NCBI GenBank assembly: GCA_028826165.1
Contig: JAPDFW010000068.1
Coordinates: forward strand, 186,001 to 250,000
Direction of reading: 5' to 3'
Length of the DNA stretch: 64,000 bases
Source of the DNA: Anaeramoeba ignava BMAN
Lineage: Eukaryota > Protista > Anaeramoebae
The position numbers were made by a program, and so were the translations under genes. Under the pieces are notes generated by a model. That model ran no database searches, was not told the origin of the DNA, and saw only the letters and a program-made list of their open reading frames with translations. Positions 2,642 to 53,962 of this stretch are shown here, one piece after another; the first letter of the stretch is position 1, and every line of letters begins with the position of its first letter.

Positions 2642-4318
2642 TTAATTTTGATTATTAAATTTATTAATTAATAAATCAAATAAATTTGGATTTGTTTGAT
2701 TTAATTGAAAATAATCAATTCCAATTTGAATTTCATCAATTATTTCTTGTGTAATTTGAATTTCATCTTTAATTTGATTCGAATAAATCCAATATTCAAA
2801 TATTTGAAATGATTTATTACTTAATTCACTATAATCTGTAACTTTATTTGAAGTATCATTTGTTACAGATAAAAACATTCCTCGATATAATTCACTTCTC
2901 ATTATTAATATTAATTTTGGAAATTTATATTGTTTTTCTTTTCTTTCAATAATAAAATATTTTTCATTTTCATTTTCATTTCCATTTAAATAAATTCTTT
3001 TCATTGTTTCTTCAATTTTTTCATTTGAATTTATAATTTCTTTAATTTCAAAATATAATTTTGGATTTATTATTCTGTTTGAATAAATCATTTCAAATAT
3101 TTGATTTGATTCTTTAATTGATTTTTTTGAAATAATTTCTTGAAGTTTTTCAATTTGATTTTGATTTTGATTTAATCTATATTTCAATATTAATTTATGA
3201 GCTTCAATTATTTCTCCATTTTTGGTTTTAAATGAAATATTGCAAAATTCTTTTCTTCTAAATAGTTTTATCAAATCTTCTTCAAGATTGGAAAAAGAAG
3301 GAGAATAATAAAGAAATGATCTGTTATATCCACAAAGAATATGATAATTAGAAATTTTTTCATTAAATCTTAATTTAGGAAGTTCAATTTGAATTGGAAT
3401 TTTTTTATATTCTGTATTTCCAGTTCCTAATTCACCATAACCATTGTTTCCAAATCCAATTAATTTTGAATTGGAAGTTAAAATCAAAGTATAAGTATCG
3501 CCAATAGAAATTTCAAGAATATTATCATCATTTTCAAATAAAGATGATTTGATTTCAGTAAATTTATAAGTATTTTCATTTTTGCCAAGTCCATTATATC
3601 GATTATGGCCACATGAATAAAGTTTTCTTTTTGGATTTTCATTTTCATTTTCAATTTCGATCAACATTACTGAATGAGTATATCCACATTGAATATCAAT
3701 TATTTTGCCTTTTGGAATATTTTGGATTTTGGTTAATTTTTGGATTTTCCATTTGTTTAATTTTCCTAATCCAAGTTGACCATAATAATTATATCCGCAT
3801 CCAAATAATTCTTGATTTGAATTTAAAAGAAAAACATGATCTGAACCATTTCCTGAAAATATTTTAGAAACATTTTTCATCATTAAAATTGGTTTTTCTG
3901 TTTTATTAAGTGCATATGAATCAAAACCAAGTTGACAATCATCATTTGAACCAATTCCATAAGCATTTTGATTTGAAGTTAATAAGTAAATTGAATTAGA
4001 TCCAGAAACAATATCTTGAATTATTCTATCATTTGTATCTTCAATTAATGATGAAATATTGATAAATTCATTTGGATTTTCTGGATTAATATATTCTCCT
4101 TTAGCAAATACATTTCCTTCTATTGTTAAAATAGCTTCATTTTGATAACCAACAGTTACTTTTTGAATATTTTCTTTAATTTGGATTTTTTGAGGATTTT
4201 GTTTTGAATTAAATAAATATTCTATTGCTTTTCCATTTTCAAAAAGCAAAATTGTTGATAAACTTGATGATGAAATTTGTTTAATTTGTTTTTCATTTTC
4301 ATTTTCATTTTCATTCAT
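2642..4318 (-). CDS. RCC1-repeat + tandem BTB/POZ-like protein, copy 1 (intact, lacks the N-terminal MNDCLFFGRN segment)
   Basis: 558-aa ORF with RCC1 blades (GSNDDCQLG, CGYNYYGQLG, FGNNGYGELGTG) followed by BTB-like segments (FCNISF...IEAHKLILKYR; KLILIMRSELYRGMF). Confidence 0.88.
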   Translation of the reverse strand: MNENENENEKQIKQISSSSLSTILLFENGKAIEYLFNSKQNPQKIQIKENIQKVTVGYQNEAILTIEGNVFAKGEYINPENPNEFINISSLIEDTNDRIIQDIVSGSNSIYLLTSNQNAYGIGSNDDCQLGFDSYALNKTEKPILMMKNVSKIFSGNGSDHVFLLNSNQELFGCGYNYYGQLGLGKLNKWKIQKLTKIQNIPKGKIIDIQCGYTHSVMLIEIENENENPKRKLYSCGHNRYNGLGKNENTYKFTEIKSSLFENDDNILEISIGDTYTLILTSNSKLIGFGNNGYGELGTGNTEYKKIPIQIELPKLRFNEKISNYHILCGYNRSFLYYSPSFSNLEEDLIKLFRRKEFCNISFKTKNGEIIEAHKLILKYRLNQNQNQIEKLQEIISKKSIKESNQIFEMIYSNRIINPKLYFEIKEIINSNEKIEETMKRIYLNGNENENEKYFIIERKEKQYKFPKLILIMRSELYRGMFLSVTNDTSNKVTDYSELSNKSFQIFEYWIYSNQIKDEIQITQEIIDEIQIGIDYFQLNQTNPNLFDLLINKFNNQN

Positions 4319-4812
4319 TTTTGAAAAGAAAAATGAAAAATTTTCATTTTAATTTTCATTTTAATTTTAATTTTAAATTAAAATTGATTTTGATTTTAAT
4401 TTTGATTTTTTTTAAAATTTTAATTTTAATTGGAAATTTTAATTTTAACCAAAAATTTAAACAATCATTCATTTTTTTTGAAAAGAAAAATTTTAAAAAT
4501 GATTTTTAATTTTAAATTTTAATTTTTTTTAATTTTAATTTTAATTTTAATTTTAATTTAATTTTAATTAAATTTTAATTTTAATTTTAAATTTTAATTT
4601 TGATTTAATTTTAATTTTAATTTTAATTTTAATTTTAATTTTAATTTTAATTTTAATTTTAATTTTAAATTTTAATTTTAATTTTAAATTTTATAATTTT
4701 AATTTTTAATTTTAATTTTAATTTTAATTTTAATTTTAATTTTAATTTTAATTTGATTTAAATTTAAATTTAATTTTAATTTTAATTTTAATTTTAATTT
4801 TTAATTTTGATT

Positions 4813-6586
4813 TTAATTTTGATTATTAAATTTGTTAATTAATAAATCAAATAAATTTGGATATGTTTGATTTAATTGAAAATAATCAATTCCAATTTCA
4901 ATCTCATTAATAATTTCTTGTGTAATTTCAATTTCATCTTTAATTTGATTTGAATAAATCCAATATTCAAATAATTGAAATGATTTATTACTTAATTCAC
5001 TATAATCTGTAACTTTATTTGATTTATCTTCAGTAACAGATAAAAACAATCCTCGATATAATTCACTTCTCATTATTAATATTAATTTGGGAAATTTATA
5101 TTTCTTTTCTTTTCTTTCAATAATAAAATCTTTTTCATTTTCATTTAAATAAATTCTTTTAATTGTTTCTTCAATTTTTTCATTTGAATTTATAATTTCT
5201 TTAATTTCTAAATATAATTTTGGATTTATTTTGGAATTATTTGAATAAATCATTTCAAATATTTGATTTGATTCTTTAATTGATTTTTTTGAAATAATTT
5301 CTTTAAGTTTTTCAATTTGATTTTGATTTTGATTTAATCTATATTTCAATATTAATTTATGAGCTTCAATTATTTCTCCATTTTTGGTTTTAAATGAAAT
5401 ATTGCAAAATTCTTTTCTTCTAAATAATTTTATCAAATCTTCTTCAAGATTGGAAAAAGAAGAAAGAAAAGGAGAATAATAAAGGAATGATTTTTATTTC
5501 TACAAAGAACATGATAATTTGAAATATTTTCATTAAATTTTAATTCAGGAAGTTCAATTTGAAATGGAATTTTTTGATCTTTTGTGTCTCCAGTTCCTAA
5601 TTGACCATAAGAATTATCTCCAAATCCAATTAATTTTGAATTAGAAACTAAAATCAAAGTATGAGTATCTCCACAAGAAAAATCAAGAATATTATCATCA
5701 TTTTCAAATAAATATGATTTGATTTCAGTAAATTCATAAGTATCTTTATTTTTGCCAAGTCCATTATATCGATTATTTCCACATGAATAAAGTTTTCTTT
5801 TTGGATTTTCATTTTCATCTTCATTTTCAATCAACATTACTGTATGAATATATCCACATTGAATATCAATTATTTGATCTTTTGGAATATTTTGGATTTT
5901 GGTTAATTTTTGGATATTGTTTTGCTTTATTGATGGTTCTCCTAATCCAAGTTGACCATGATAATTGAATCCACATGTGAATAATTCTTGATTTGAATTT
6001 AAAAGAAAAACATGAAATGAAGTATTTCCTGAAAATATTTTAGAAACATTTTTCATCATTAAAATTGGTTTTTCTGTTTTTTTAAGTGTTTTAGAATCTA
6101 AACCAAGTTGACAATCATAATTACCACCAATTCCATAAGCATTTTGATTTGAAGTTAATAAGTAAATTGAATTAGATCCAGAAACAATATCTTCAATTAT
6201 TCTATCATTTGTATCTTCAATTAATGATGAAATATTGATAAATTCTTTTGGATTTTTTGGATTAATATTATTTCCTTTTGCAAATACATTTCCTTCTTTT
6301 GTTAAAATAGCTTCATTTTGATAACCACCAGTTACTTTTTGAATATTTTCTTTAATTTGAATTTTTTCAGGATTTTGATTTGGATCATTTTCTCTTAAAT
6401 ATTCTATTGCTTTTCCATTTTCAAAAAGGAAAATTGTTGATAACTTGATGAAAAAATTTGTTTAATTTGTTTTTCATTTTCATTTTCATTTTCGAATTTA
6501 AATTGAATTGGTTTTGTTATTATATCTGGTTTATTTTCGATAATTTTTGGATAGTCATTTCTTCCAAAAAATAAACAATCATTCAT
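4813..6586 (-). CDS. RCC1-BTB protein, copy 2 (frameshifts near 6442 and 5492; pseudogene or assembly error)
   Basis: Three ORF pieces are colinear with copy 1. The breaks are single-base deletions relative to paralogs. Confidence 0.8.
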
Positions 6587-6763
6587 TTTTGAAAAGAAAA
6601 AAATGAAAAAATGATTTTGGAATTTTAATTTTAATTTTAATTTTGATTTGAATTTTAATTTTGATTTTAATTTTAATTTGGAATTTTTATTTTGATTTTA
6701 ATTTTGATTTTGATTTTAATTTTAATTTTAATTTTAATTTTAATTTTAATTTTAATTTTAATT

Positions 6764-8530
6764 TTAATTTTGATTATTAAATTTGTTAATTAATAAATCA
6801 AATAAATTTGGATATGTTTGATTTAATTGAAAATAATCAATTCCTCTTTCTAATTCTTCAATGATTTCTTTTGTAATCTCAATTTCATCTTTAATTTGAT
6901 TTGAATAAATCCAATATTCAAATATTTGAAATGATTTATTACTTAATTCACTATAATCTGTAACTTTATTAGAAGTATCATTTGTTACAGATAAAAACAT
7001 TCCTCGATATAATTCACTTCTCATTATTAATATTAATTTAGGAAATTTATATTGTTTTTCTTTTCTTTCAATTATAAAATCTTTTTCATTTTCATTTAAA
7101 TAAATTCTTTTCATTGTTTCTTCAATTTTTTCATTTGAATTTATAATTTCTTTAATTTCAGAATATAATTTTGGATTTATTTTGGAATTATTTGAATAAA
7201 TCATTTCAAATATTTGATTTGATTCTTTAATTGATTTATTTGAAATAATTTCTTTAAGTTTTTCAATTTGATTTTGATTTTGATTTAATCTATATTTCAA
7301 TATTAATTTATGAGCTTCGATTATTTCTCCATTTTCTGTTTTAAATGAAATATTGCAAAATTCTTTTCTTCTAAATAGTTTTATCAAATCTTCTTCAAGA
7401 TTTGAAAAAGAAGAAAGGAAAGGAGAATAATAAATAAATGATTTTAGATCACCACAAGAAATATGATAATTAGAAATATTTTCATTAAATCTTAATTTAG
7501 GAAGTTCAATTTGAATTGGAATTTTTTTATATTTTGTGTCTCCAGTTCCTAATTCACCATAAGAATTATTTCCAAATCCAATTAATTTTCCTTTAGAAGT
7601 TAATATCAAAGTATGATAAAAACCAACAGAAAAATCAAGAATATTATCATTTTCAAATAAAGATGATTTGATTTCAGTAAATTCATAAGTATTTTCATAT
7701 TGGCCAAGTCCATTAAATTGATAATTTCCACATGAATAAAGTTTTCTTTTTGGATGTTCATTTTCATTTTCATTTTCAATCAACATTATTGAATAAGTAT
7801 ATCCACATTGAATATCAATTATTTTGCCTTTTGGAATATTTTGGATTTTGGTTAATTTATTGATTTTCCATTTGTTTAATTTTCCTAATCCAAGTTGACC
7901 ATAATCATTATATCCACATCCAAATAATTCTTGATTTGAATTTAAAAGAAAAACATGATCTGAAGTATCTCCTGAAAATATTTTAGAAACATTTTTCATC
8001 ATTAAAATTGGTTTTTCTGTTTTTTGGAGTGTTTGATAATCAAAACCAAGTTGACCAGAATAATTTAAACCAATTCCATAAACATTTTGATTTGAAGTTA
8101 ATAAGTAAATTGAACGAGATCCAGAAACAATATCTTGAATTATTCTATCATTTATATCTTCAATTAATGATGAAATATTGATGAATTGATTTGGATTATT
8201 TGGATTAATATCTTTTCCTTTGGCAAATACATTTCCTTCTATTGTTAAAATAGCTTCATTTGATAACCAACAGATACTTTGAATATTTTCTTTAATTTGA
8301 ATTTTTGAAGGATTTTGATTTGGATCATTTTTCTCTTAAATATTCTATTGCTTTTCCATTTTTAAAAAGGAAAATTGTTGTAAACTTGATGAAATTTGTT
8401 TAATTTGTTTTTCATTTTCATTTTCATTTTCATTTTCAAATTTAAATTGAATTGGTTTTGTTATTTCTTTTTGTTTCATTTTTGAAAAGTTTTGGTTTTT
8501 GATTTAAACCAAAAATAAACAATCATCCAT
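6764..8530 (-). CDS. RCC1-BTB protein, copy 3 (several homopolymer indels at about 8255-8480)
   Basis: 412-aa intact 3' ORF. The 5' part (MDDCLFFG from ATG 8530) is homologous but broken by short indels in T/A runs. Confidence 0.8.
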
Positions 8531-8720
8531 TTTTGAAAAAGAAAAATGAAAAATGATTTTGGAATTTTAATTTAGATTTTAATTTTAATTATTAAATTTG
8601 TTAATTTAAATTTGGATTTGTTTGATTTAATTGAAAATAATCAATTCCCATTTGAATTTCATCAATTATTTCTTTTTGAATTTGATTTAATTTTTGTTCG
8701 AATTAAAAATTAAACAATTT

Positions 8721-10572
8721 TTACTTTTTCTCATTTTGATTTTGATTTTGATTATTAAATTTGTTAATTAATAAATCAAATAAATTTGGATATGTTTGAT
8801 TTAATTGAAAATAATCAATTCCTCTTTTAAGTTCATCAATTATTTCTTGTGTAATTTGAATTCCATCTTTGATTTGATTTGAATAAATCCAATATTCAAA
8901 TATTTGAAATGATTCTTCACTTAATTCACTATAATCTGTAACTTTATTAGAAGTATCATTTGTTACAGATAAAAACATTCCTCGATATAATTCACTTCTC
9001 ATTATTAATATTAATTTAGGAAATTTATATTGTTTTTCTTTTCTTTCAATTATAAAATCTTTTTCATTTTCATTTTCATTTCCATTTAAATAAATTCTTT
9101 TCATTGTTTCTTCAATTTTTTCATTTGAATTTATAATTTCTTTAATTTCAGAATATAATTTTGGATTTATTATTTTGTTTGAATAAATCATTTCAAATAT
9201 TTGATTGGATTCTTTAATTGATTTAGTTGAAATAATTTCTTGAAGTTTTTCAATTTGATTTTCATTTTCATCTTTTAATCTATATTTCAATATTAATTTG
9301 TGAGCTTCGATTATTTCTCCATTTTCTGTTTTAAATGAAATATCACAAAATTCTTTTCTTCTAAATAGTTTTATCAAATCTTCTTCAAGATTGGAAAAAG
9401 AAGAAAGGAAAGGAGAATAATAAATAAATGATTTTTCATTTCTACAAAGAATATGATAATTGAAAATATTTTCATTAAATCTTAATTTAGGAAGTTCAAT
9501 TTGAATAGGAATTAATTTATTTTCTGTATCTCCAGTTCCTAATTGACCAAATTTATTATTTCCAAATCCGATTAATTTTGAATTGGCTGTTAAAATCAAA
9601 GTATGAGTATTTCCACCAGAAAAATCAAGAATATTATCATTTTCAAATAAAGATGATTTTATTTCAGTAAATTCATAAGTATCTTCATATTTGCCAAGTC
9701 CATTATATTTATAATTTCCACATGAATAAAGTTTTCTTTTTGGATTTTCATTTTCATTTTCAATCAACATTATTGAATAAGTATATCCAGATTGAATATC
9801 AATTATTTTACCTTTTGGAATATTTTGGATTTTGGTTAATTTATTGATTACTGGCAATTTTTTTGATGATAACCCAAGTTTGGAGTAGTAATTCCAACCA
9901 CATGTAAATAATTCTTGATTTGGATTTAAAAGGAAAACATGATCTGAAGTATCTCCTGAAAATATTTTAGAAACATTTTTCATCATTAAAATTGGTTTTT
10001 CTGTTTTTGGAAGTGTTTTAGAATTAAAACCAAGTTGACCATAATAATTATTACCAATTCCATAAGCATTTTGATTTGAAGTTAATAAGTAAATTGATTT
10101 AGCTCCACAAACAATATCTTGAATTATTCTATCATTTGTATCTTGAATTAATGATGAAATATTGATAAACTCTTTTGGATTTTCTGGATTAATATTTCTT
10201 CCTTTGGCAAATACATTTCTTTCTATTGTTAAAATAGATTCATTATAATCACCAACAGTTACTTTTTGAATATTTTCAATTTGGATTTTTTTGAGATGTT
10301 GATTTGGATCATTTTGATTTAAATATTCTATTGCTTTTCCATTTTTAAAAAGGAAAATTGAAAAATTTCCTGATGAAAAATTTCATTTTGATTTGAATTT
10401 TCATTTTAATTTTTTTTTCATTTTCATTTTCATTTTCATTTTCATTTTCATTTTCATTTTCATTTTCATTTTCATTTTCAAATTTAAATTGAATTGGTTC
10501 TATTATTTTTTCTGGTTCATTTTTGAAAAGAGTTGGTAATTGATTTCTTCCAAAAAATAAACAATCATTCAT
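8721..10572 (-). CDS. RCC1-BTB protein, copy 4 (garbled or frameshifted near 10350-10420)
   Basis: MNDCLFFGRN start at 10572, an EN repeat, then homologous sequence continuing into the 421-aa ORF. Confidence 0.8.
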
Positions 10573-24957: not shown

Positions 24958-27900
24958 TTAATCTCTTTTAGTTTGTTTGATTTCAGGATCTGGAATGTAA
25001 ATTGATCTTGAATAAACGTATGGAGAGAATGGTTTTCTCTTTACGATTCTTCCATGTTTTGTATCAACATTAATTTTTGGATTTTTCCAATCAATTTTTC
25101 CATCAACAAATTGATGTTCACAAGCAATAACACCTCTTGAAATTGTCATAATTGGAACTCCAGTAATTTCCATTCCTTCAAACCTAATTTTTATTTTATT
25201 TTAATTTTGATTTTAATTTTTGATTTTAATTTTAATTTTAATTTTAATTTTTTTTTACATGTTGTATTCAATGTATGAATGATGTGTTTTTCCTGAAATA
25301 ACTCTAGTTGCTTTTGGATCCCAAATTGCAATATCTGCATCAGCTCCTTCACGAATAACTCCTTTTTGTGGGAAAACATTGAAAATCTTAGCTGCATTTG
25401 TACTAAATATTTTAATTAAATTTTTTAATTTAAGATTTTAATTTAATATTTTAATTAAATATTTTAATTTAATATTTTAATTAAATATTTTAATTTAATA
25501 TTTTAAGATAATTTACCTTGTAATAGCAACAAAATCACGACGAGAAATTTTTCCTGAATTAACACCAAGTTGCCACTAAATAAATATTAAATAAATAATA
25601 ATTATTAAATAAATATTAAATATTAATTAAATAAATATTAAATAAATATTAATTAAATAAATATTAAATAAATATTAAATAAATATTAAATATTAATTAA
25701 ATATTAAATAGATATTAAATATTAAATAAATATTAAATAAATATTAAATAAATATTAAATAAATATTAAATAAATATTTACAAGAACAGATGGTCTATCT
25801 TCAATTCCTCCACAACCATTAGGGATTTTTCTAAATTTAAAAAATAAAAAATTATATTCATTTCATAAATAAAATAATTAATACCTGAAATCATTGAATC
25901 CCATTCTCTTTTGTTTGTAATCAAAAACACAATGATCTGTTCCTGTTGTTGAAATAACTCCATTTTGAATGTGTTGCCATAAAGCTTTTTGATGTAATTT
26001 GGGTCTGAAAGGTGGACTCATAACATGTGCAGCAGCAACATCGAAATCCTTATCCCCTTTTATATAAAAAATTTAATTGAAAAATTTAATTGAAAAAAAA
26101 AAGGTGAAAAAAAAACTGTCAAATTTTTTACAATAAGCTGAATCATCTTTTGACAAATGAGTTGCAAGTGCTGTTAATTATTATTTTTGTTTAATATCAA
26201 AAATTTATTTTCATTTTCATTAGTTTTGTAATTAATTAATTAATTGATAATTATATTCTTTTTTTTTTAGAATATTTACATTCTCCAAAACAAACCTAAA
26301 TAAAAAAGAAAAAAAGTTTGGAAAATGAATTAATTAAAATTAAAAATAAAAAATAATTTAAATAAAATTTACTTGTCCATCTTGTTTAGCTCTTTAATTT
26401 ATAGAGAAAGAAAATTTAATAAGAAATTAATAAGAATTTAATAAAAAATAATAAGAATTTAATAAAAATTTACCTCATAATTGCATCACTTGCTTCTTTG
26501 CAACTAACATGAACAACATATAAAGGAGCTAAAAATCAAAAAATCAAAAATAAAAAATCAAAAATCAAAAAAAAAGTGGAATAAAAAATTTTCTTACCAT
26601 TTGCTAATCTAATAAATAATAAATAATAAATAATAAATAATAAATAATAAATAATAAATAATAAATAATAAATAATAAATAATAAATATTAAAATATAAA
26701 AATTAATTCACCTTGCAATCATTAATGCTCTATTAGTTGCCTAATTATTAAATTAAATTAAAATAAAATTAAAAAAAGTGGATTTAATTTGATTTGATTT
26801 GATTTAATTTCTTACTTCTCCTTCAAGATAAGATGGTCTAGAAAGTGCATGAGCTTCTGGTCCCATAATTCCACGTTCAACCATATTATTACATCCTTCA
26901 ACAACCAAATCTCCATTCTAAAAAAAAAAATCAAAAACAAGAAATTTGTTTGTAAAAATTTTTAGAGAATTTTTTTTTTGTAAATTTTTTTTACTTCTGC
27001 ATGAACTTGACAAAGAGCTCCTAATTCTGCACATCTTTTGAAACTTTGGAAGAGATAAGAATCTTCGAGTTGAAGAATTCCTTTCTAAATATTTTCCAAT
27101 TACAAAAAAAATAATAAAAGAAATTTTTGAATAAAAAAAAAATAATGAAAAATTTACATAAGCAAGAAAGTGTTTAAAAGAATTGATTCCATAATCTTTG
27201 ACGCAAATTTCTATTTTAAGATTATTTTTAAGTTTAAAAACAATTAAAAGAATAAATTTAAATTAAAAAATAATAATAAATTTTTACCAAGTTCTTTTCC
27301 AATTTGTTCATTATAAGCAACAACACACATATGATGAGAAACTATAAAATAAAACAAATTAAAATTAAAATCAAAATTAAAATTAAAATTATTATCAATA
27401 TTAATATTAAAATTACCATCGCAATGAATTCTATCTGTAGCCCATTCCATCCATGTTTTATAAGCATCAACTAAACTTGGATTTGATTTAGAAGGACAAA
27501 TAAAATCAATTAACTAATTATTTAAAAAAATTTTAATCAACATAAATTGAACTTTAATCCAAATTTCCTTTTTGTTTCTTTTTTAAATTAATTTAAATTA
27601 ATTTTTTTTTGTTTACCAATGTTGATCCCTAAAAATAAAAATAAATAAAAATAAAAATAAATTAAATTTAAATTTAAATTTAAAATTAGATTTAAAATTA
27701 AAAATTACTCCAATAATTGCCATCTTTGTTCCATTTGGATCTTTTTAAAAAAAAAAAAAAAGCAAAAAAAAAAAAATTAATCAAAAATTTTTCTTAAATT
27801 CGAAAATTGAGAAAAAGAAAAAAAATTTACAATCATCTTTTGCATAAGTTCTATTTATTTTGATTATTTAAAATAAAATTAGTAAAAAATTTATTATTAA

Positions 27901-28440
27901 ATAAATTATAATAAATAATATTTACCCTCCAAAAGGCTAAATTAAGAAAGAAGAATAAAGAAAAATAAAGAAGAATAAAAATTAATTTATTCTGTAATTT
28001 AAATTTATTTAAGAAAATTTATTACCATTTGCATGTGAGTATGAGGATCTAATTAAAAGAAAAAAAGAAATTTGATTGTTTAAAAAAGATTGAGAAAAAG
28101 TTTTAAAAATAATATTTTAAAGGATAACTTACCAATTCCACCTGGAAGTCTTTTATTTGGAATAGCCAATAAATAAAAAGAGAAAAAAAGAAAAAAAGCA
28201 AAAAAAATTTAATTAATTAAAATAAAAAGAGGAAGAATAAAGTAAAGCAAAAAAAAAAATTTTTTTTAAATTGGTTTTTTACAAATATTTTCCAGTACAA
28301 TCAATGACTTTAACATTTTCTTCAACTTTAATTTCTTTATCAACTTTGACAATTATTCCATTATCAATTAAAACATCAACATCAGGAATTTCTTCATCTG
28401 CATTAATAATAGTTCCTTTTTTCAATAAAATCTTAGACAT
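24958..28440 (-). CDS. DPYS: Dihydropyrimidinase / D-hydantoinase, 495 aa, 23 exons: 28440-28283, 28149-28133, 28048-28026, 27936-27926, 27850-27831, 27740-27709, 27628-27617, 27513-27417, 27341-27288, 27210-27158, 27084-26995, 26917-26816, 26740-26712, 26608-26598, 26528-26474, 26391-26373, 26295-26280, 26170-26132, 26056-25885, 25830-25782, 25575-25517, 25402-25259, 25183-24958
   Basis: Manual splicing at 22 GT-AG introns gives one 1488-nt stop-free frame with all amidohydrolase ligands: [15 protein letters not shown] (HxH), [13 protein letters not shown] (carbamylated Lys), QVHAENGD, LYVVHVS, GTDHC. Also [30 protein letters not shown] and [11 protein letters not shown]. Confidence 0.93.
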
Positions 28441-32540: not shown

Positions 32541-32596
32541 TTCAATAAAAATTTTTTTCATTTTTTTCATTTTTTTCTTTTTTTTCTTTTTTGAAA

Positions 32597-34457
32597 ATGT
32601 CAAAATTTTATGCTGTTCGTGTTGGAAGACAAACTGGTATTTTTTTTTCTTGGTTAGATTGTGAAAAACAAGTTAAAGGTTTTCCAAAAGCTGTTTATAA
32701 ATCATTTAAAACTTTATCAGAAGCTGAAAATTTTCTTTCAAATAATCCAAATTTATCAACAAATCAAAATATAAATTCAATTCAAAATTTATCAACAAAT
32801 CAAAATATAAATTCAATTCAAAATTTATCAACAAATCAAAATTTAAATTCAATCCAAAATTTATCAACAAATCAAAATATAAATTCAATTCAAAATTTAT
32901 CAAGAAATCAAAATTTAAATTCAATTCAAAATATAAATTCAAAATTTTATGCTGTTCGTGTTGGAAGACAAACTGGTATTTTTTTTTCTTGGTTAGACTG
33001 TGAAAAACAAGTTAAAGGTTTTCCAAAAGCTGTTTATAAATCATTTAAAACTTTATCAGAAGCTGAAAATTTTCTTTCAAATAATCCAAATTTATCAAAA
33101 AATCAAAATATAAATTCAATTCAAAATTTATCAACAACCCAAAATATAAAATCAATTCCAAATTTAAATTCAATTCAAAATATAAATTCAAATCAAAATA
33201 TAAAATCAATTCCAAATATAAATTCAATTCAAAATATATCAACAAATCAAAATATAAATTCAATTCCAAATATAAATTCAATTCCAAATAATATTCAAAA
33301 TATAAATTCAATCCAAAATTTAAAATCAATTCAAAATTTATCAACAAATCCAAATAATATTCAAAATATAAATTCAATTCAAAATATAAAATCAATTCAA
33401 AATAAAAATTATCAGCCAAACATTTCTATTTCAAAAATTCAAAATATAAAATCAATTCCAAATATATCAACAAATCAAAATTTATCAACAAATCAAAATA
33501 TAAATTCAAATCCAAATAATATTCAAAATATAAATTCAATTCCAAATAATATTCAAAATATAAATTCAATTCAAAATTTAAAATCAATTCAAAATATAAA
33601 ATCAATTCCAAATTTATCAACAAATCAAAATATAAATTCAAATCCAAATAATATTCAAAATATAAATTCAATTCCAAATAATATTCAAAATTTAAATTCA
33701 ATTCAAAATTTAAAATCAATTCAAAATTTATCAAGAAATCAAAATAATATTCAAAATATAAATTCAATTCCAAATAATATTCAAAATATAAATTCAATTC
33801 AAAATATAAAATCAATTCAAAATTTATCCAAAATAAGACCTGAAAAAAAAAGAAAAGAAAATGAATTCCTTGAAGTATTTACAGATGGAGCTTGTCAAGC
33901 AAATGGAACAAAAAGAGCAAAAGGAGGAATAGGAATTTTTTGGAAAGAAACTCAAGGCAAGTTATTTATTTTCAAACAAAACAAAAATATAATAACTTAA
34001 AATTGAAATAAAATTAATATTAATAGGTCTTAATTTGGAAAATGTTTCAAAACCACTTGAAAGTAAAAAAAAATTTATTTTTGAAAATTAAAAAAAAATT
34101 AAATTCAAAATGAAAAAAATAGAAAAACAAACAAATAATTCGGCAGAACTTACTGCAATTTTAGAAGCAATTAAAATGTGTCCAAAAAATAAAAATCTTA
34201 ATATCTTTTCAGATTCTCAATATTCAATTAATTGTATTACAAAATGGAGTAAAAAATGGAAGAAAAATAGATGGAAAACTACAAAAGGAAACAAAGTTGA
34301 AAACAAAGAATTAATTCAAGAAATTTTAAATGAAATATCAAAACATTCTGGAAAAATTAAATTTACTTATGTTGAAGGTCACAATAATGATTTTGGAAAT
34401 GAAATGGCAGATTTTTTAGCAAAAAAAGGTGCTTTTGAAAATAGAAAAGAAAAATAG
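32597..34457 (+). CDS. RNASEH1: Ribonuclease H1 with two hybrid-binding domains and a long N/I/Q/S linker; exons 32597-33956, 34027-34062, 34123-34457
   Basis: Two KFYAVRVGRQTGIFFSW...YKSF domains; catalytic motifs VFTDGAC, QTNNSAEL, FSDSQY, VEGH, GNEMADFLAKKGA. Intron 33957-34026 is GC-AG and intron 34063-34122 is GT-AG. Confidence 0.92.
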
Positions 34458-36646: not shown

Positions 36647-39087
36647 ATGTTCAATCAAAATAATTTATCCTTTTTTTTTGGAAGAAATCAAGCACCAATC
36701 CTTTTTAAAAATGAATCAAAGAAAATAAAAAAACCAAAACAATTTAAATTTGAAAATGGAGAATTAAAACTTTTAAATAACGAAATAAATCTAATTCCAA
36801 TTAAAGTCGAATATATAGAACCAGAAAAAATATTTTACAAATGTGAACCAATTGAAAATCAAAATGAAATTGAAAATCAAAATGAAAATCAAAATGAAAC
36901 TGAAAATCAAAATCAAATTGAAAATCAAAATCAAAATCAAAATAAAAATCAAATTGAAAATCAAAATCAAATTGAAAATCAAAATCAAATTGAAAATCAA
37001 AATCAAATTGAAAATCAAAATCAAAATGAAAATCAAAATAAAAATCAAAATCAAAATCAAAATCAAAATCAAAATCAAAATCAAAATCAAAATCAAAATT
37101 GAAAATAAAAATGAAACTGAAAATCAAAATCAAATTGAAAATGAAAATCAAAATCAAAATCAAATTGAAAATCAAAATCAAATTGAAAATGAAAATCAAA
37201 ATCAAAATCAAATTGAAAATAAAAATGAAACTGAAAATCAAAATCAAATTGAAAATCAAAATAAAAATCAAAATCAAAATCAAAATCAAATTCAAAATGA
37301 AAATCAAATTCAAAATCAAAATCAAATTCAAAATGAAAATGAAAATGAAAATGAAAATGAAAAACAAATTAAGCAAATTTCATCATGTTATTTTTCAACA
37401 ATTTTCCTTTTTAAAAATGGAAAAGCAATAGAATATTTAAGTAATGAATATTCAAATCAAAATCCTCAAAAAATCCAAATTGAAAATATTCAAAAAGTAT
37501 CTGTTGGTTTTCGAAATGAAACTATTTTAACAATAGAAGGAAATGTATTTGCCAAAGGAAAAGATATTAATTCAAAAAATACAAATGAATTTATCAATAT
37601 TTCATCATTAATTGAAGATACAAATGATAGAATAATTCAAGATATTGTTTCTGGATCTTTTTCAATTTACTTATTAACTTCAAATCAAAATGCTTATGGA
37701 ATTGGTTTAAATAATTTTGGCCAACTTGGTTTTGATTCTGAAACACTTAAAGAAACAAAAAAACCAATTTTAATAATGAAAAATGTTTCTAAAATATCTT
37801 CAGGAAATTCTTCACATCATGTTTTTCTTTTAAATTCAAATCAAGAATTATTTGGATGCGGATATAATCAATTTGGTCAACTTGGATTAGGAGAATCAAT
37901 AAAAGAAAAAGAAAAAATCCAAAAATTAACCAAAATCCAAAATATTCCAAAAGGTAAAATAATTGATATTCAATGTGGAGGTTTCCATTCAATAATGCTG
38001 ATTGAAAATGAAAATGAAAATCCAAAAAGAAAACTTTATTCATGTGGAAATTATCATTATAATGGACTTGGCAAAGAAGGAGATACTTATGAATTTACTG
38101 AAATCAAATCACCTTTTTTTGAAAATGATGATAATATTCTTGATTTTTCCGTTGGATATACACATAATTTAATTTTAACAACAGAAGGGAGAGTGATAGG
38201 ATTTGGAGATAATTTATATGGTGAATTAGGAACTGGAAATACAAATCATCAATTAATTCCAATCCAAATTGAACTTCCTGAATTAATATTTAATAAATAT
38301 ATTTTCAATTATCATATTTCTTGTGGATATTTCAATTCATTTATTTATTGCCCTTCTTCTTTTTCCAATCTTGAAGAAGATTTGATAAAACTATTCCGAA
38401 GAAAAGAATTTTGTGATATTTCATTTAAAACAGAAAATGGAGAAATAATCAAAGCTCATAAATTAATATTGAAATATAGATTAAATCAAAATCAAAATCA
38501 AATTGAAAAACTTCAAGAAATTATTTCAACTAAATCAATTAAAGAATCAAATCAAATATTTGAAATGATTTATTCAAACAGAATAATAAACCCAAAATTA
38601 TATTCTGAAATTAAAGAAATTATAAATTCTAATGAAAAAATTGAAGAAACAATGAAAAGAATTTATTTAAATGAAAATGAAAATGAAAATGAAAATGAAA
38701 ATGAAAAAGATTTTATAATTGAAAGAAAAGAAAAACAATATAAATTTCCCAAATTAATATTAATAATGAGAAGTGAATTATATCGAGGAATGTTTTTATC
38801 TGTAACAAATGATACTTCTAATAAAGTTACAGATTATAGTGAATTAAGTAATAAATCATTTCAAATATTAGAATATTGGATTTATTCAAATCAAATTAAA
38901 AAAGGAATTAAAATTACACAAAGAAATGATTAATGAAATTAAAATTGGAATTGATTATTTTCAATTAAATCAAACAAATCCAAATTTATTTGATTTATTA
39001 ATTATCAAATTTAATCATCAAAATGAAAATTACAAAACTAAAGAAGGATATATTCCAATCCACATTCAATATATAAATCAAAATTAA
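36647..39087 (+). CDS. RCC1-BTB protein, copy 5, with a unique N-terminal insertion and long NQ/NE tract (frameshifts near 37099 and 38921)
   Basis: MFNQNNLSFFFGRNQ start, RCC1 blades and BTB segments homologous to copies 1-4. The corrected frame ends ...HQNENYKTKEGYIPIHIQYINQN* at 39087. Confidence 0.8.
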
Positions 39088-39357
39088 AATCAAAATTAAA
39101 ATTAAAATTAAAATTAAAATTAAAATTAAAATTAAAATTAAAATTAAAATTAAAATTAAAATTAAATTTAAAATTTAAAATCAAAATTAAAATCAAAATT
39201 AAAATCAAAATTAAAATCAAAATTAAAATTAAAATTAAAATTAAAATTAAAATCAAAATTAAAATCAAAATTAAAATTAAAATTAAAATTAAAATTAAAA
39301 TTAAAATCAAAATCAAAAATTCATTTTTTCATTTTTTCATTTTTTTTCTTTTTAAAA

Positions 39358-41141
39358 ATGAATGAAATTTTATTTTTTGGAAGAAATGTTATTCCAATTA
39401 TTATCAAAAATGAACCGAATATAATAACAAAACCAATTCAATTTAAATTTGAAAATGAAAATGAAAATAAAAATGAAAAACAAATTAAACAAATTTCATC
39501 AGGTTATTTTTCAACAATTTTCCTTTTTAAAAATGGAAAAGCAATAGAATATTTATATGAAAATGATTCAAAACAAAATCCTGAAAAATCCAAATTGAAG
39601 AAAATATTCAAAAAGTAACTGTTGGTGAAGATAATGAAACTATTTTAACAATAGAAGGAAATGTATTTGCCAAAGGAAAAGATATTAATTCAAAAAACCC
39701 AAATGAATTTATCAATATTTCATCATTAATTGAAGATAAAAATGATAGAATAATTGAAGATATTGTTTCTGGATATAATTCAATTTACTTATTAACTTCA
39801 AATCAAAATGTTTATGGAATTGGTTCAAATGAATATGGTCAACTTGGTTTTGATTCTAAAACACTTCCAAAAACAGAAAAACCAATTTTAATAATGAAAA
39901 ATATTTCTAAAATATTTTCAGGAATTTCTTCAAATCATGTTTTTCTTTTAAATTCAAATCAAGAATTGTTTGTATGTGGTGGTAATTACAATTCTAAATT
40001 TGGATTAGGAGAATCAAGAAAAGAATTAAAAATCCAAAAATTAACCAAAATCCAAAATATTCCAAAAGGTAAAATAATTGATATTCAATGTGGATTCTCT
40101 TTCTCAATAATGTTGATTGAAAATGAAAATGAAAATCCAAAAAGAAAACTTTATTCATGTGGAAATTATGAATTAAACGGACTTGGCAAATATGGGGATA
40201 CTGATGAATTTACTGAAATCAAATCATATTTATTTGAAAATGATGATGATATTCTTGATTTTTCTTGTGGAAATAGACATACTTTGATTTTAACTTCCAG
40301 AATGATGATAGGATTTGGAGATAATTTTTATGGTCAATTAGGAACTGGAGATACAAATAATCAATTAATTCCTATTCAAATTGAACTTCCTAAATTAATA
40401 TTTAATGAAGATATTTCCAATTATCGTATTCTTTGTAGAAATGAAAAATCATTTCTTTATTATTCTCCTCCTTCTTTTTCCAATCTTGAAGAAGATTTGA
40501 TAAAATTATTTGAAAGAAAAGAATTTTGTGATACTTCATTTAAAACAAAAAATGGAGAAATAATTGAAGCTCATAAATTAATATTGAAATATAGATTAAA
40601 TCAAAATGAAAATCAAAATCAAAATCAAAATGAAATTGAAAAACTTAAAGAAATTATTTCAAATAAATCAATTAAAGAATCAAATCAAATATTTGAAATG
40701 ATTTATTCAAACAGAATAATAAATCCAGTATTATATTCTGAAATTAAAGAAATTATAAATTTAAATGAAAAAATTGAAGAAACAATGAAAAGAATTTATT
40801 TAAATGAAAATGAAAATGAAAAAGATTTTATAATTGAAAGAAAAGAAAAACAATATAAATTTCCTAAATTAATATTAATAATGAGAAGTGAATTATATCG
40901 AGGAATGTTTTTATCTGTAACAGAAGATAAATCAAATAAAGTTACAGATTATAGTGAATTAAGTAATAAATCATTCCAAATATTTGAATATTGGATTTAT
41001 TCAAATCAAATTAAAGATGAAATTCAAATTACAAAAGAAATCATTAATGAATTAGAAACAGGAATTGATTATTTTCAATTAAATCAAACAAATCCAAATT
41101 TATTTGATTTATTAATTAAGAAATTTAAAAATCAAAATTAA
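39358..41141 (+). CDS. RCC1-BTB protein, copy 6 (single A-run frameshift near 39585)
   Basis: MNEILFFGRN start; colinear with the other copies; intact 415-aa 3' ORF. Confidence 0.82.
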
Positions 41142-52179: not shown

Positions 52180-53962
52180 TTAATTTTGATTATTAAATTT
52201 CTTAATTAATAAATCAATTAAATTTGGATTTGTTTGATTTAATTGAAAATAATCAATTCCAATTTCTAATTCATCAATAATTTCTTGTGTAATTTGAATT
52301 TCATCTTTAATTTGATTTGAATAAATCCAATATTCAAATATTTGAAATGATTTATTACTTAATTCACTATAATCTGTAACTTTATTTGATTTATCTTCAG
52401 TTACAGATAAAAACATTCCTCGATATAATTCACTTCTCATTATTAATATTAATTTGGGAAATTTATATTGTTTTTCTTTTCTTTCAATTATAAAATCTTT
52501 TTCATTTTCATTTTCATTTTCATTTTCATTTTCATTTTCATTTTCATTTAAATAAATTCTTTTCATTGTTTCTTCAATTTTTTCATTTAAATTTATAATT
52601 TCTTTAATTTCTGAATATAATTTTGGATTTATTTTGGAATTGTTTGAATAAATCATTTCAAATATTTGATTTGATTCTTTAATTGATTTTTTTGAAATAA
52701 TTTCTTTAAGTTTTTCAATTTGATTTTGATTTTGATTTTGATTTAATCTATATTTTAATATTAATTTATGAGCTGATATTATTTCTTCATTTTTGGTTTT
52801 AAATGAAATATTGCAAAATTCTTTTCTTCTAAATAGTTTTATCAAATCTTCTTCAAGATTGGAAAAAGGAGAAAGAGAAGGAGAATAATAAAGAAATGAT
52901 CTGAAATCTCCACAATAAATATGATAATTGAAAATATTTTCATTAAATCTTAATTTAGGAAATTCAATTTGAATTGGAATTAGCTGTTCATTTGTATCTC
53001 CAGTTCCTAATTGACCAAAATCATTATTCCCAAATGCAATCAATTTTTGTTTGGATGTTAAAATCAAAGAATGATAATCTCCAACAGAAATCTCAATAAT
53101 ATTATCATCATTTTCAAATAAAGATGATTTGATTTCAGTAAATTCATAAGTTTTTTCTTCATTTTTGACAAGTCCATTTAATTGATAATATCCACATGAA
53201 TAAAGTTTTCTTTTTGGATTTTCATCTTCATCTTCAATCAACATTATTGAATGAAATTCTCCACATTGAATATCAATTATTTTACCTTTTGGAATATTTT
53301 GGATTTTGGTTAATTTTTGGATTTTATCTTTTAATGATTCTCCTAATTCAAGTTTATCCCAAAAATTATATCCGCATCCAAATAATTATTGATTTGAATT
53401 TAAAAGAAAAACATGATGTGAAATAATTCCTGAAAATATTTTAGAAACTTTTTTCATCATTAAAATTGGTTTTTCTTTTTTTTTAAGTGTTTTAGAATCA
53501 AAACAAAGTTGACCATATTCATTTGAACCAATTCCATAAACATTATGATTTGAAGTTAATAAGTAAATTGAACTAAAGCCAGAAACAATATCTTCAATTA
53601 TTCTATCATTTTTATCTTCAATTAATGATGAAATATTGATAAATTCATTTGGATTATTTGGATTAATATCATATCCTTTGGAAAATACATTTCCTTCTAT
53701 TGTTAAAATAGTTTCATTTTGATAACCAACAGTTACTTTTTGAATATTTTCTTCAATTTGGATTTAAATCTTCATTTAAATATTCTATTGCTTTTCCATT
53801 TTTAAAAAGGAAAATTGTTGAAAATCTTCTTGTTGAAATTTGTTTAATTTGTTTTTCATTTTCATTTTCAAATTTAAATTGAATTGGTTTTGTTATTTTA
53901 TTTGGTTCATTTTTGAAAAGTTTTGAATATTGATTTGAACCAAAAAATATAATTTCATTCAT
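52180..53962 (-). pseudogene. RCC1-BTB protein, copy 7, probable pseudogene
   Basis: Multi-base frameshifting deletion near 53760, in-frame nonsense codon GAA>TAA at 53386-53388, and loss of conserved glycines (GQLC, NGLV). Confidence 0.8.

Follow-up and report, generated by a model that had tools for sequence, protein, structure and literature searches.

The fungal PRPP synthetase first posed the question of what leads a single gene to collect many introns, and it is raised again by one locus of the anaerobic amoeba Anaeramoeba ignava BMAN, a metamonad. The window, i.e. the whole stretch of 64,000 nucleotides that was analysed (contig JAPDFW010000068.1, positions 186,001 to 250,000), carries on its minus strand, at 24958-28440, a predicted dihydropyrimidinase gene interrupted by 22 introns. 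Metamonads are known for intron loss. A preliminary description of this DNA had seen here a hidden gene, filled by massive gene-specific intron gain, possibly for domestication or the control of expression. Our analysis indicates that the gene is a real outlier, that it is already annotated and that it probably reflects an old gene-specific gain, regulation being unsupported.

Gene model and predicted product

The reading frame, with its ATG at 28440 and the end of its stop codon at 24958, comprises 23 exons, 1488 nt and 495 aa, and no internal stop codon was found in the joined frame. The 22 introns measure 54-206 nt and, on re-reading of the minus strand, GT-AG ends were present at 22 of 22, as first described. 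Eight exons have 11-23 nt (17, 23, 11, 20, 12, 11, 19 and 16 nt) and the intron density reaches 14.8 introns per kb of CDS. Exon 1 (28283-28440, 158 nt, with the start codon) is followed by exons 2 (28133-28149, 17 nt), 3 (28026-28048, 23 nt), 4 (27926-27936, 11 nt), 5 (27831-27850, 20 nt), 6 (27709-27740, 32 nt), 7 (27617-27628, 12 nt), 8 (27417-27513, 97 nt) and 9 (27288-27341, 54 nt). The residues that align with the metal ligands of homologues are distributed over exon 3 (His61 and His63, the HxH motif, which had rightly been assigned to a 23-nt exon), exon 10 (27158-27210, 53 nt; Lys154, the metal-bridging lysine), exon 11 (26995-27084, 90 nt; His187), exon 15 (26474-26528, 55 nt; His243) and exon 19 (25885-26056, 172 nt; Asp320), and those that align with substrate residues over exon 19 (Ser293) and exon 20 (25782-25830, 49 nt; Asn341). 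Between them lie exons 12 (26816-26917, 102 nt), 13 (26712-26740, 29 nt), 14 (26598-26608, 11 nt), 16 (26373-26391, 19 nt), 17 (26280-26295, 16 nt) and 18 (26132-26170, 39 nt). Exon 21 (25517-25575, 59 nt) comes after the longest intron, exon 22 (25259-25402, 144 nt) carries an Amidohydro_1 match and exon 23 (24958-25183, 226 nt) holds the stop codon.

When a profile built from homologues was spliced onto the raw DNA, with GT/AG signals, a constant intron penalty and nothing else as further inputs, 22 introns were found and all 22 were exact to the base, giving again the structure first described, with its micro-exons down to 11 nt. An ab initio parser trained without the dihydropyrimidinase gene recovered 21 of the 22 introns in the first round, and split the gene in later self-trained rounds. 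The gene model is secure at the DNA level, splicing being predicted; an artefact or a pseudogene is ruled out by the conservation of a twin copy (see below), the exact alignment of the homologue profile and the intact active-site residues.

Database searches, run exon by exon, returned Pfam Amidohydro_1, PDB dihydropyrimidinases (E 4e-15) and pieces of TIGR02033 in order. The A. ignava enzyme has the metal and substrate residues of the family of human DPYS and plant PYD2 (TIGR02033), and its best structure matches belong to this family. A catalytically dead CRMP-like protein is ruled out, all these residues being present, and the product is a predicted dihydropyrimidinase / D-hydantoinase (EC 3.5.2.2) with an intact frame. 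Its predicted activity would be the hydrolysis of dihydrouracil and dihydrothymine, and the pathway partners, DPYD-like and beta-ureidopropionase genes, are found in the genome. Set beside 97 other genes, it has the codon usage nearest to that of actin/EF1A (z 5.2, with three reference genes only), hinting at a high expression.

Intron density relative to the rest of the genome

A total of 32,108 introns is reported for A. ignava, i.e. 2.13 per gene, with a modal length of 76 nt and 8% GC (PMC11550330). At this published mean, 22 introns in one gene have a Poisson p of about 1e-15. As a background sample, 264 kb, mostly of the same contig and equal to 0.6% of the assembly (42,843,398 bases in 147 contigs), were parsed with a self-trained ab initio parser. 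The 107 other genes of this sample have 1.08 introns per kb of CDS and 1.6 per gene, with a maximum of 6.9/kb in Rab genes, and only 1 of their 104 internal exons is of 30 nt or less, a parser of this kind being liable to under-call micro-exons. Within this 0.6% ab initio sample, a density typical of the genome is therefore ruled out (14.8 versus 1.08/kb), and the dihydropyrimidinase gene is a true intron-density outlier, with an about tenfold excess. The neighbouring genes, credited at first with 0-6 introns, have 0-5 in the parse, and the actins, eIF6 and LRR-PP2C are intronless as had been stated. Among other amidohydrolases, 0-3 introns were counted over the stretches available, and for most aminotransferases and aldehyde dehydrogenases the match runs through one long frame. 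In about 310 kb, clusters of at least three micro-exons were found only in the dihydropyrimidinase and beta-ureidopropionase genes.

The comparison with genome averages elsewhere, on which the preliminary description also relied, was overstated since the orthologues are themselves often intron-rich (12 introns in Trifolium, 10 in Paratrimastix and 10 in an alga-like locus), while the excess over the gene's own genome stands. For reference, the mammalian intron density is about 6/kb (PMC3488318). The A. ignava gene has about twice the introns of any orthologue seen, at other positions.

Several other features were observed in these sequences. Arrays of RCC1-plus-BTB-like and BTB-TLDc genes with 0-2 introns occupy 2642-10572, 36843-41141 and 52180-53962 of the window, and such expanded families pull down the mean intron count of the genome. 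An RNase H1-like gene (window 32591-34457) has two similar N-terminal units, each followed by long Asn/Gln/Ile-rich repeats. On another contig, 3.4 kb of coding-like Ser-Lys, Ser-Thr and Glu/Lys-rich repeats with many frame breaks (L008:100-3520, i.e. C69:26100-29520) seem to be a repeat protein gene hurt by assembly errors or decay.

Second copy and annotation status

The genome has two dihydropyrimidinase loci, the second being on a 44.5-kb contig (C53), so that the gene, supposed at first to be single-copy, occurs twice in the assembly. No difference was found between the two copies in 1464 aligned exon bases (of 1488). In the introns, 25 substitutions and 244 gap columns separate the copies; the GT-AG ends are intact in all 22. 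The similarity extends beyond the gene, positions 19000-44512 of C53 (L003-L005) repeating about 12000-38100 of the window at 95-98% identity. The C53 copy probably represents either a second haplotype or a duplication of recent date, and for the contig itself a second haplotype is likely; A. ignava is assumed to be haploid by the authors of the genome paper. If C53 is read as a second haplotype, part of the published gene duplicates may be alleles. Private A/T repeats enlarge introns, and the longest one, intron 20 (25576-25781, minus strand), a nearly pure A/T repeat, measures 206 nt in the window and 312 nt on C53. In other amidohydrolase genes, introns of more than 1 kb are built of one repeat (L040:345-1446 and L043:1630-3126).

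Supplementary Data 4 of the genome paper (PMC11550330) lists two A. ignava dihydropyrimidinases, M0811_07889 and M0811_14813, and the window gene is one of these twins. The flanking locus tags follow the gene order of the window (eIF6 07880, peptidase 07886, NAPRT 07887, NFU 07890 and RNase H 07892). The idea of a hidden gene, of a kind systematically missed by annotation, is refuted for this gene by its presence in this table. The case reveals no missed gene and no new element.

Gain or retention of the introns

The comparison of intron positions with orthologues, proposed in the preliminary description, was carried out on five intron-bearing orthologous loci, including Trifolium, Paratrimastix, L045 and L049; L046 was left out for its spurious alignment, and the set holds neither the A. 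flamelloides orthologues (M0812_28704 and M0813_09042) nor a gene from animals, fungi or Naegleria. Three of the 22 positions are matched in another eukaryote, which is more than the 0.5 expected by chance (p 0.016): the intron after exon 12 in L049, the one after exon 19 in the alga-like locus L045 and the one after exon 21 in Paratrimastix. The other 19 are absent from all five loci. Three positions are common to Trifolium and Paratrimastix, and thus old, and none of them is present in A. ignava. The orthologue of Tritrichomonas, a member of the sister group, is intronless. Since 19 of 22 positions are unshared and three old sites are missing, gain is favored, and a loss of old introns followed by many gains would be the simplest reading of these positions. 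Given the few orthologues compared, more of the 22 positions may prove old. The massive gene-specific gain first proposed is therefore upheld for the excess and probable for the gain. A literature search for a paper on the intron positions of dihydropyrimidinase found none.

Taken together, these data lead us to propose, with a probability of about 0.6, that a normal and probably well-expressed dihydropyrimidinase gene turned into a gene-specific hot spot of intron gain in the Anaeramoeba line. Conserved and expressed genes have been reported to gain introns preferentially (PMC3488318). Most of the old eukaryotic introns would have been lost first, and about 19 new ones would then have been added singly, long ago, to coding positions taken roughly at random. 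The route would not involve transposons; an example would be the repair of breaks with an AT-rich filler that already read as an intron. The short introns would be recognised one by one (intron definition) and would be tolerated because intron definition makes exon size nearly irrelevant. Introns would then have been kept short, and donors strong, by selection for splicing a transcript with 22 introns both constitutively and efficiently, the output being a single constitutive mRNA, which encodes the enzyme of step 2 in the reductive breakdown of pyrimidines.

The properties of the introns are in agreement with this hot spot. Their median length of 78 nt and their 9% GC are near the published mode (76 nt, 8% GC), and the U12 donor motif was found in 0 of 22. 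They are ordinary, short, AT-rich introns of the major (U2) spliceosome type, whose removal from the RNA is predicted. Their phases are flat (8/7/7), but they show no significant difference from those of other genes (p 0.15). Compared with the introns predicted elsewhere, they are more often of 135 nt or less (21/22 versus 64%, p 0.003) and more often have a GTAA donor (20/22 versus 56%, p 0.002), a combination that would fit selection for efficient intron-definition splicing.

A rather unlikely alternative is that the gene is a relic: the Anaeramoeba stem would once have been intron-dense throughout, most genes would have been cleared of their introns through recombination with reverse-transcribed mRNA, from which dihydropyrimidinase would have escaped. 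Intron loss is indeed rife in the genus, A. pumila keeping 22 introns in total and A. flamelloides having 1.3 introns per gene (PMC11550330). The intronless actins and eIF6 of the window, the beta-ureidopropionase gene, which pairs a 609-nt intron-free block with a dense tract, and the weak 5' lean of the introns (first half holding 14/22; KS p 0.095) go in the same direction. However, an escaped gene should keep its old sites, and the three sites common to the plant and Paratrimastix are gone. Such a past would also need a genome-wide density far above the mammalian one (PMC3488318), and the codon usage suggests a high expression, which should favor loss via reverse-transcribed mRNA.

The pyrimidine breakdown pathway

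The preliminary description had supposed that intron gain acts on selected metabolic genes. The beta-ureidopropionase gene, single copy at C64:353385-356759 (L031:40-2097, minus strand), speaks for it: a first exon of 609 nt is followed by exons of 28, 40, 18, 26, 27, 105 and 40 nt, i.e. at least 8 introns within about 110 residues in a stretch seen without its 3' end. The amidohydrolases, aminotransferases and aldehyde dehydrogenases speak against it, as do two DPYD/DHODH-like genes (C1:1546639-1547517 and C138:42306-43226), nearly intron-free since their frames stay open over 998 and 915 aa. Dense tracts in two of three pyrimidine-breakdown genes, obtained from one targeted look, are suggestive. 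The middle of the first exon of beta-ureidopropionase is richer in GC (GC3 reaching 0.48 versus a median near 0.12). In the same gene, the order of two small exons is the reverse of that in the homologue P0329, one short piece that was expected is lacking and an intron start is duplicated; these anomalies are probably due to a local mis-assembly.

Two related explanations could be issued from this lead. The first is a selected regulatory device, in which the introns burdening the genes of steps 2 and 3 would tie the flux to splicing, through retention and decay, delay or intron-mediated enhancement. It would account for micro-exon clusters restricted to two consecutive enzymes in the roughly 310 kb scanned and for the biased codon usage of dihydropyrimidinase, and the fungal precedent is likewise a nucleotide-metabolism gene (PMC532390). 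Against it, the DPYD-like genes of step 1 have open frames of 900-1000 aa, and beta-ureidopropionase came up in a search aimed at its family, with a tract that covers only part of the gene and an assembly that looks damaged. The exons themselves also argue against such a device. The number of exons of 23 nt or less is close to that expected under random placement (8 observed versus 6.1, p 0.22), with a mild shortage of those of 10 nt or less (0 versus 2.9, p 0.03), and a clustering of micro-exons beyond chance is rejected. Only 6 of the 21 internal exons preserve the frame, so that a cassette-exon design is rejected for want of an excess, and a conserved intronic element sought in the 22 introns was found in none. 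Since the exon sizes fit random placement, a point in favor of the hot spot proposed above, the micro-exons are a by-product of density and not cassettes. We consider this device improbable. The second explanation, to which we give an equally small chance, is that dihydropyrimidinase and beta-ureidopropionase gained their micro-exon tracts independently in a pathway-linked accumulation, as members of a small class of splicing-tuned metabolic genes.

Origin of the gene

The lateral transfer of a bacterial gene, which would have taken the place of the native one and then have gathered introns quickly like the Basidiomycete alpha-amylase, appears quite improbable. In its favor, the identity to proteobacterial enzymes (about 50%) is higher than that to eukaryotic ones (39-46%). 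The absence of the old intron sites and the frequency of lateral transfer in the A. ignava genome also fit it, and the AU test does not reject a grouping with proteobacteria (p-AU 0.17). In quick tree searches, the only phylogeny made, the A. ignava enzyme was nonetheless nested inside the proteobacteria in 0 of 2 trees, and trees constrained with parabasalids or with other eukaryotes scored above the free quick search. Furthermore, the C-terminal insertion on exon 23 also occurs in parabasalid enzymes, which favors vertical descent, and three intron sites recur in other eukaryotes. On these sequences, vertical descent seems more likely than lateral transfer. The published table of lateral transfers carries no gene ids, and an absence from it is uninformative.

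Two bacterial-like sequences were met during this comparison. A marine eukaryote contig (L047:758-4710) carries, in head-to-head arrangement, a carbon-nitrogen hydrolase gene and a proteobacterial-like dihydropyrimidinase gene that has four introns, and this pair may be the remnant of a transferred operon. P0329, from the transcriptome of Salpingoeca infusionum, is a 770-aa fusion of dihydropyrimidinase and carbon-nitrogen hydrolase which groups with bacterial sequences by transfer or contamination.

Comparison with known cases of intron gain

Single-gene intron pile-ups are rare and already known from fungi. The PRPP synthetase gained 14 introns in M. grisea and 6 in N. crassa by a mechanism that is unknown (PMC532390; Nielsen et al. 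2004). Like dihydropyrimidinase, it is a conserved nucleotide-metabolism gene whose lineage-specific introns are far above the genome average; it differs by enzyme and lineage, and its gains were polarised with four genomes, whereas the A. ignava case was compared only with distant orthologues. The laterally acquired alpha-amylase of Basidiomycetes has 8-22 short introns, against genome averages of 3.8-5.7 (PMC3584928; Da Lage et al. 2013). It shares with our gene the many short introns and the lack of an identifiable donor sequence, but its bacterial origin is proven and its host genomes are intron-rich, whereas the A. ignava genome is intron-moderate and vertical descent more likely.

Introner elements likewise give rise to numerous new introns whose sites and phases are random, but they form a shared sequence family, spread genome-wide and leave target-site duplications, none of which applies to the A. 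ignava gene. The similarity among the 22 introns (mean pair score 11.5) is close to that of random A. ignava introns (11.1), and target-site duplications sought at the junctions amounted to overlaps of 0-2 nt only; an introner family is ruled out, and the domestication first envisaged finds no support in introns unrelated to each other and without such duplications. An old burst of such intron-generating transposons, since eroded, would suit the random positions, the flat phases and the fast decay of AT-rich introns, but it is very improbable with mutually dissimilar introns and junctions without duplications, and one gene alone would not be expected to be hit by a burst.

By analogy, the A. 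ignava dihydropyrimidinase would best be classed with the intron-gain hot spots of the fungal PRPP-synthetase type. It provides a clean metamonad example, in a genus whose members range from one nearly intronless species to two that have more than 30,000 introns, so that the gains are datable with public genomes. To express this gene, the A. ignava spliceosome would have to handle runs of 11-20-nt exons with catalytic residues. In A. ignava itself, the C-terminal half of the PRPP synthetase lies in one exon. Two tandem PRPP-synthetase-like genes were located at C93:514238-518038, with C-terminal halves in one frame and N-terminal parts that match weakly, being divergent or split.
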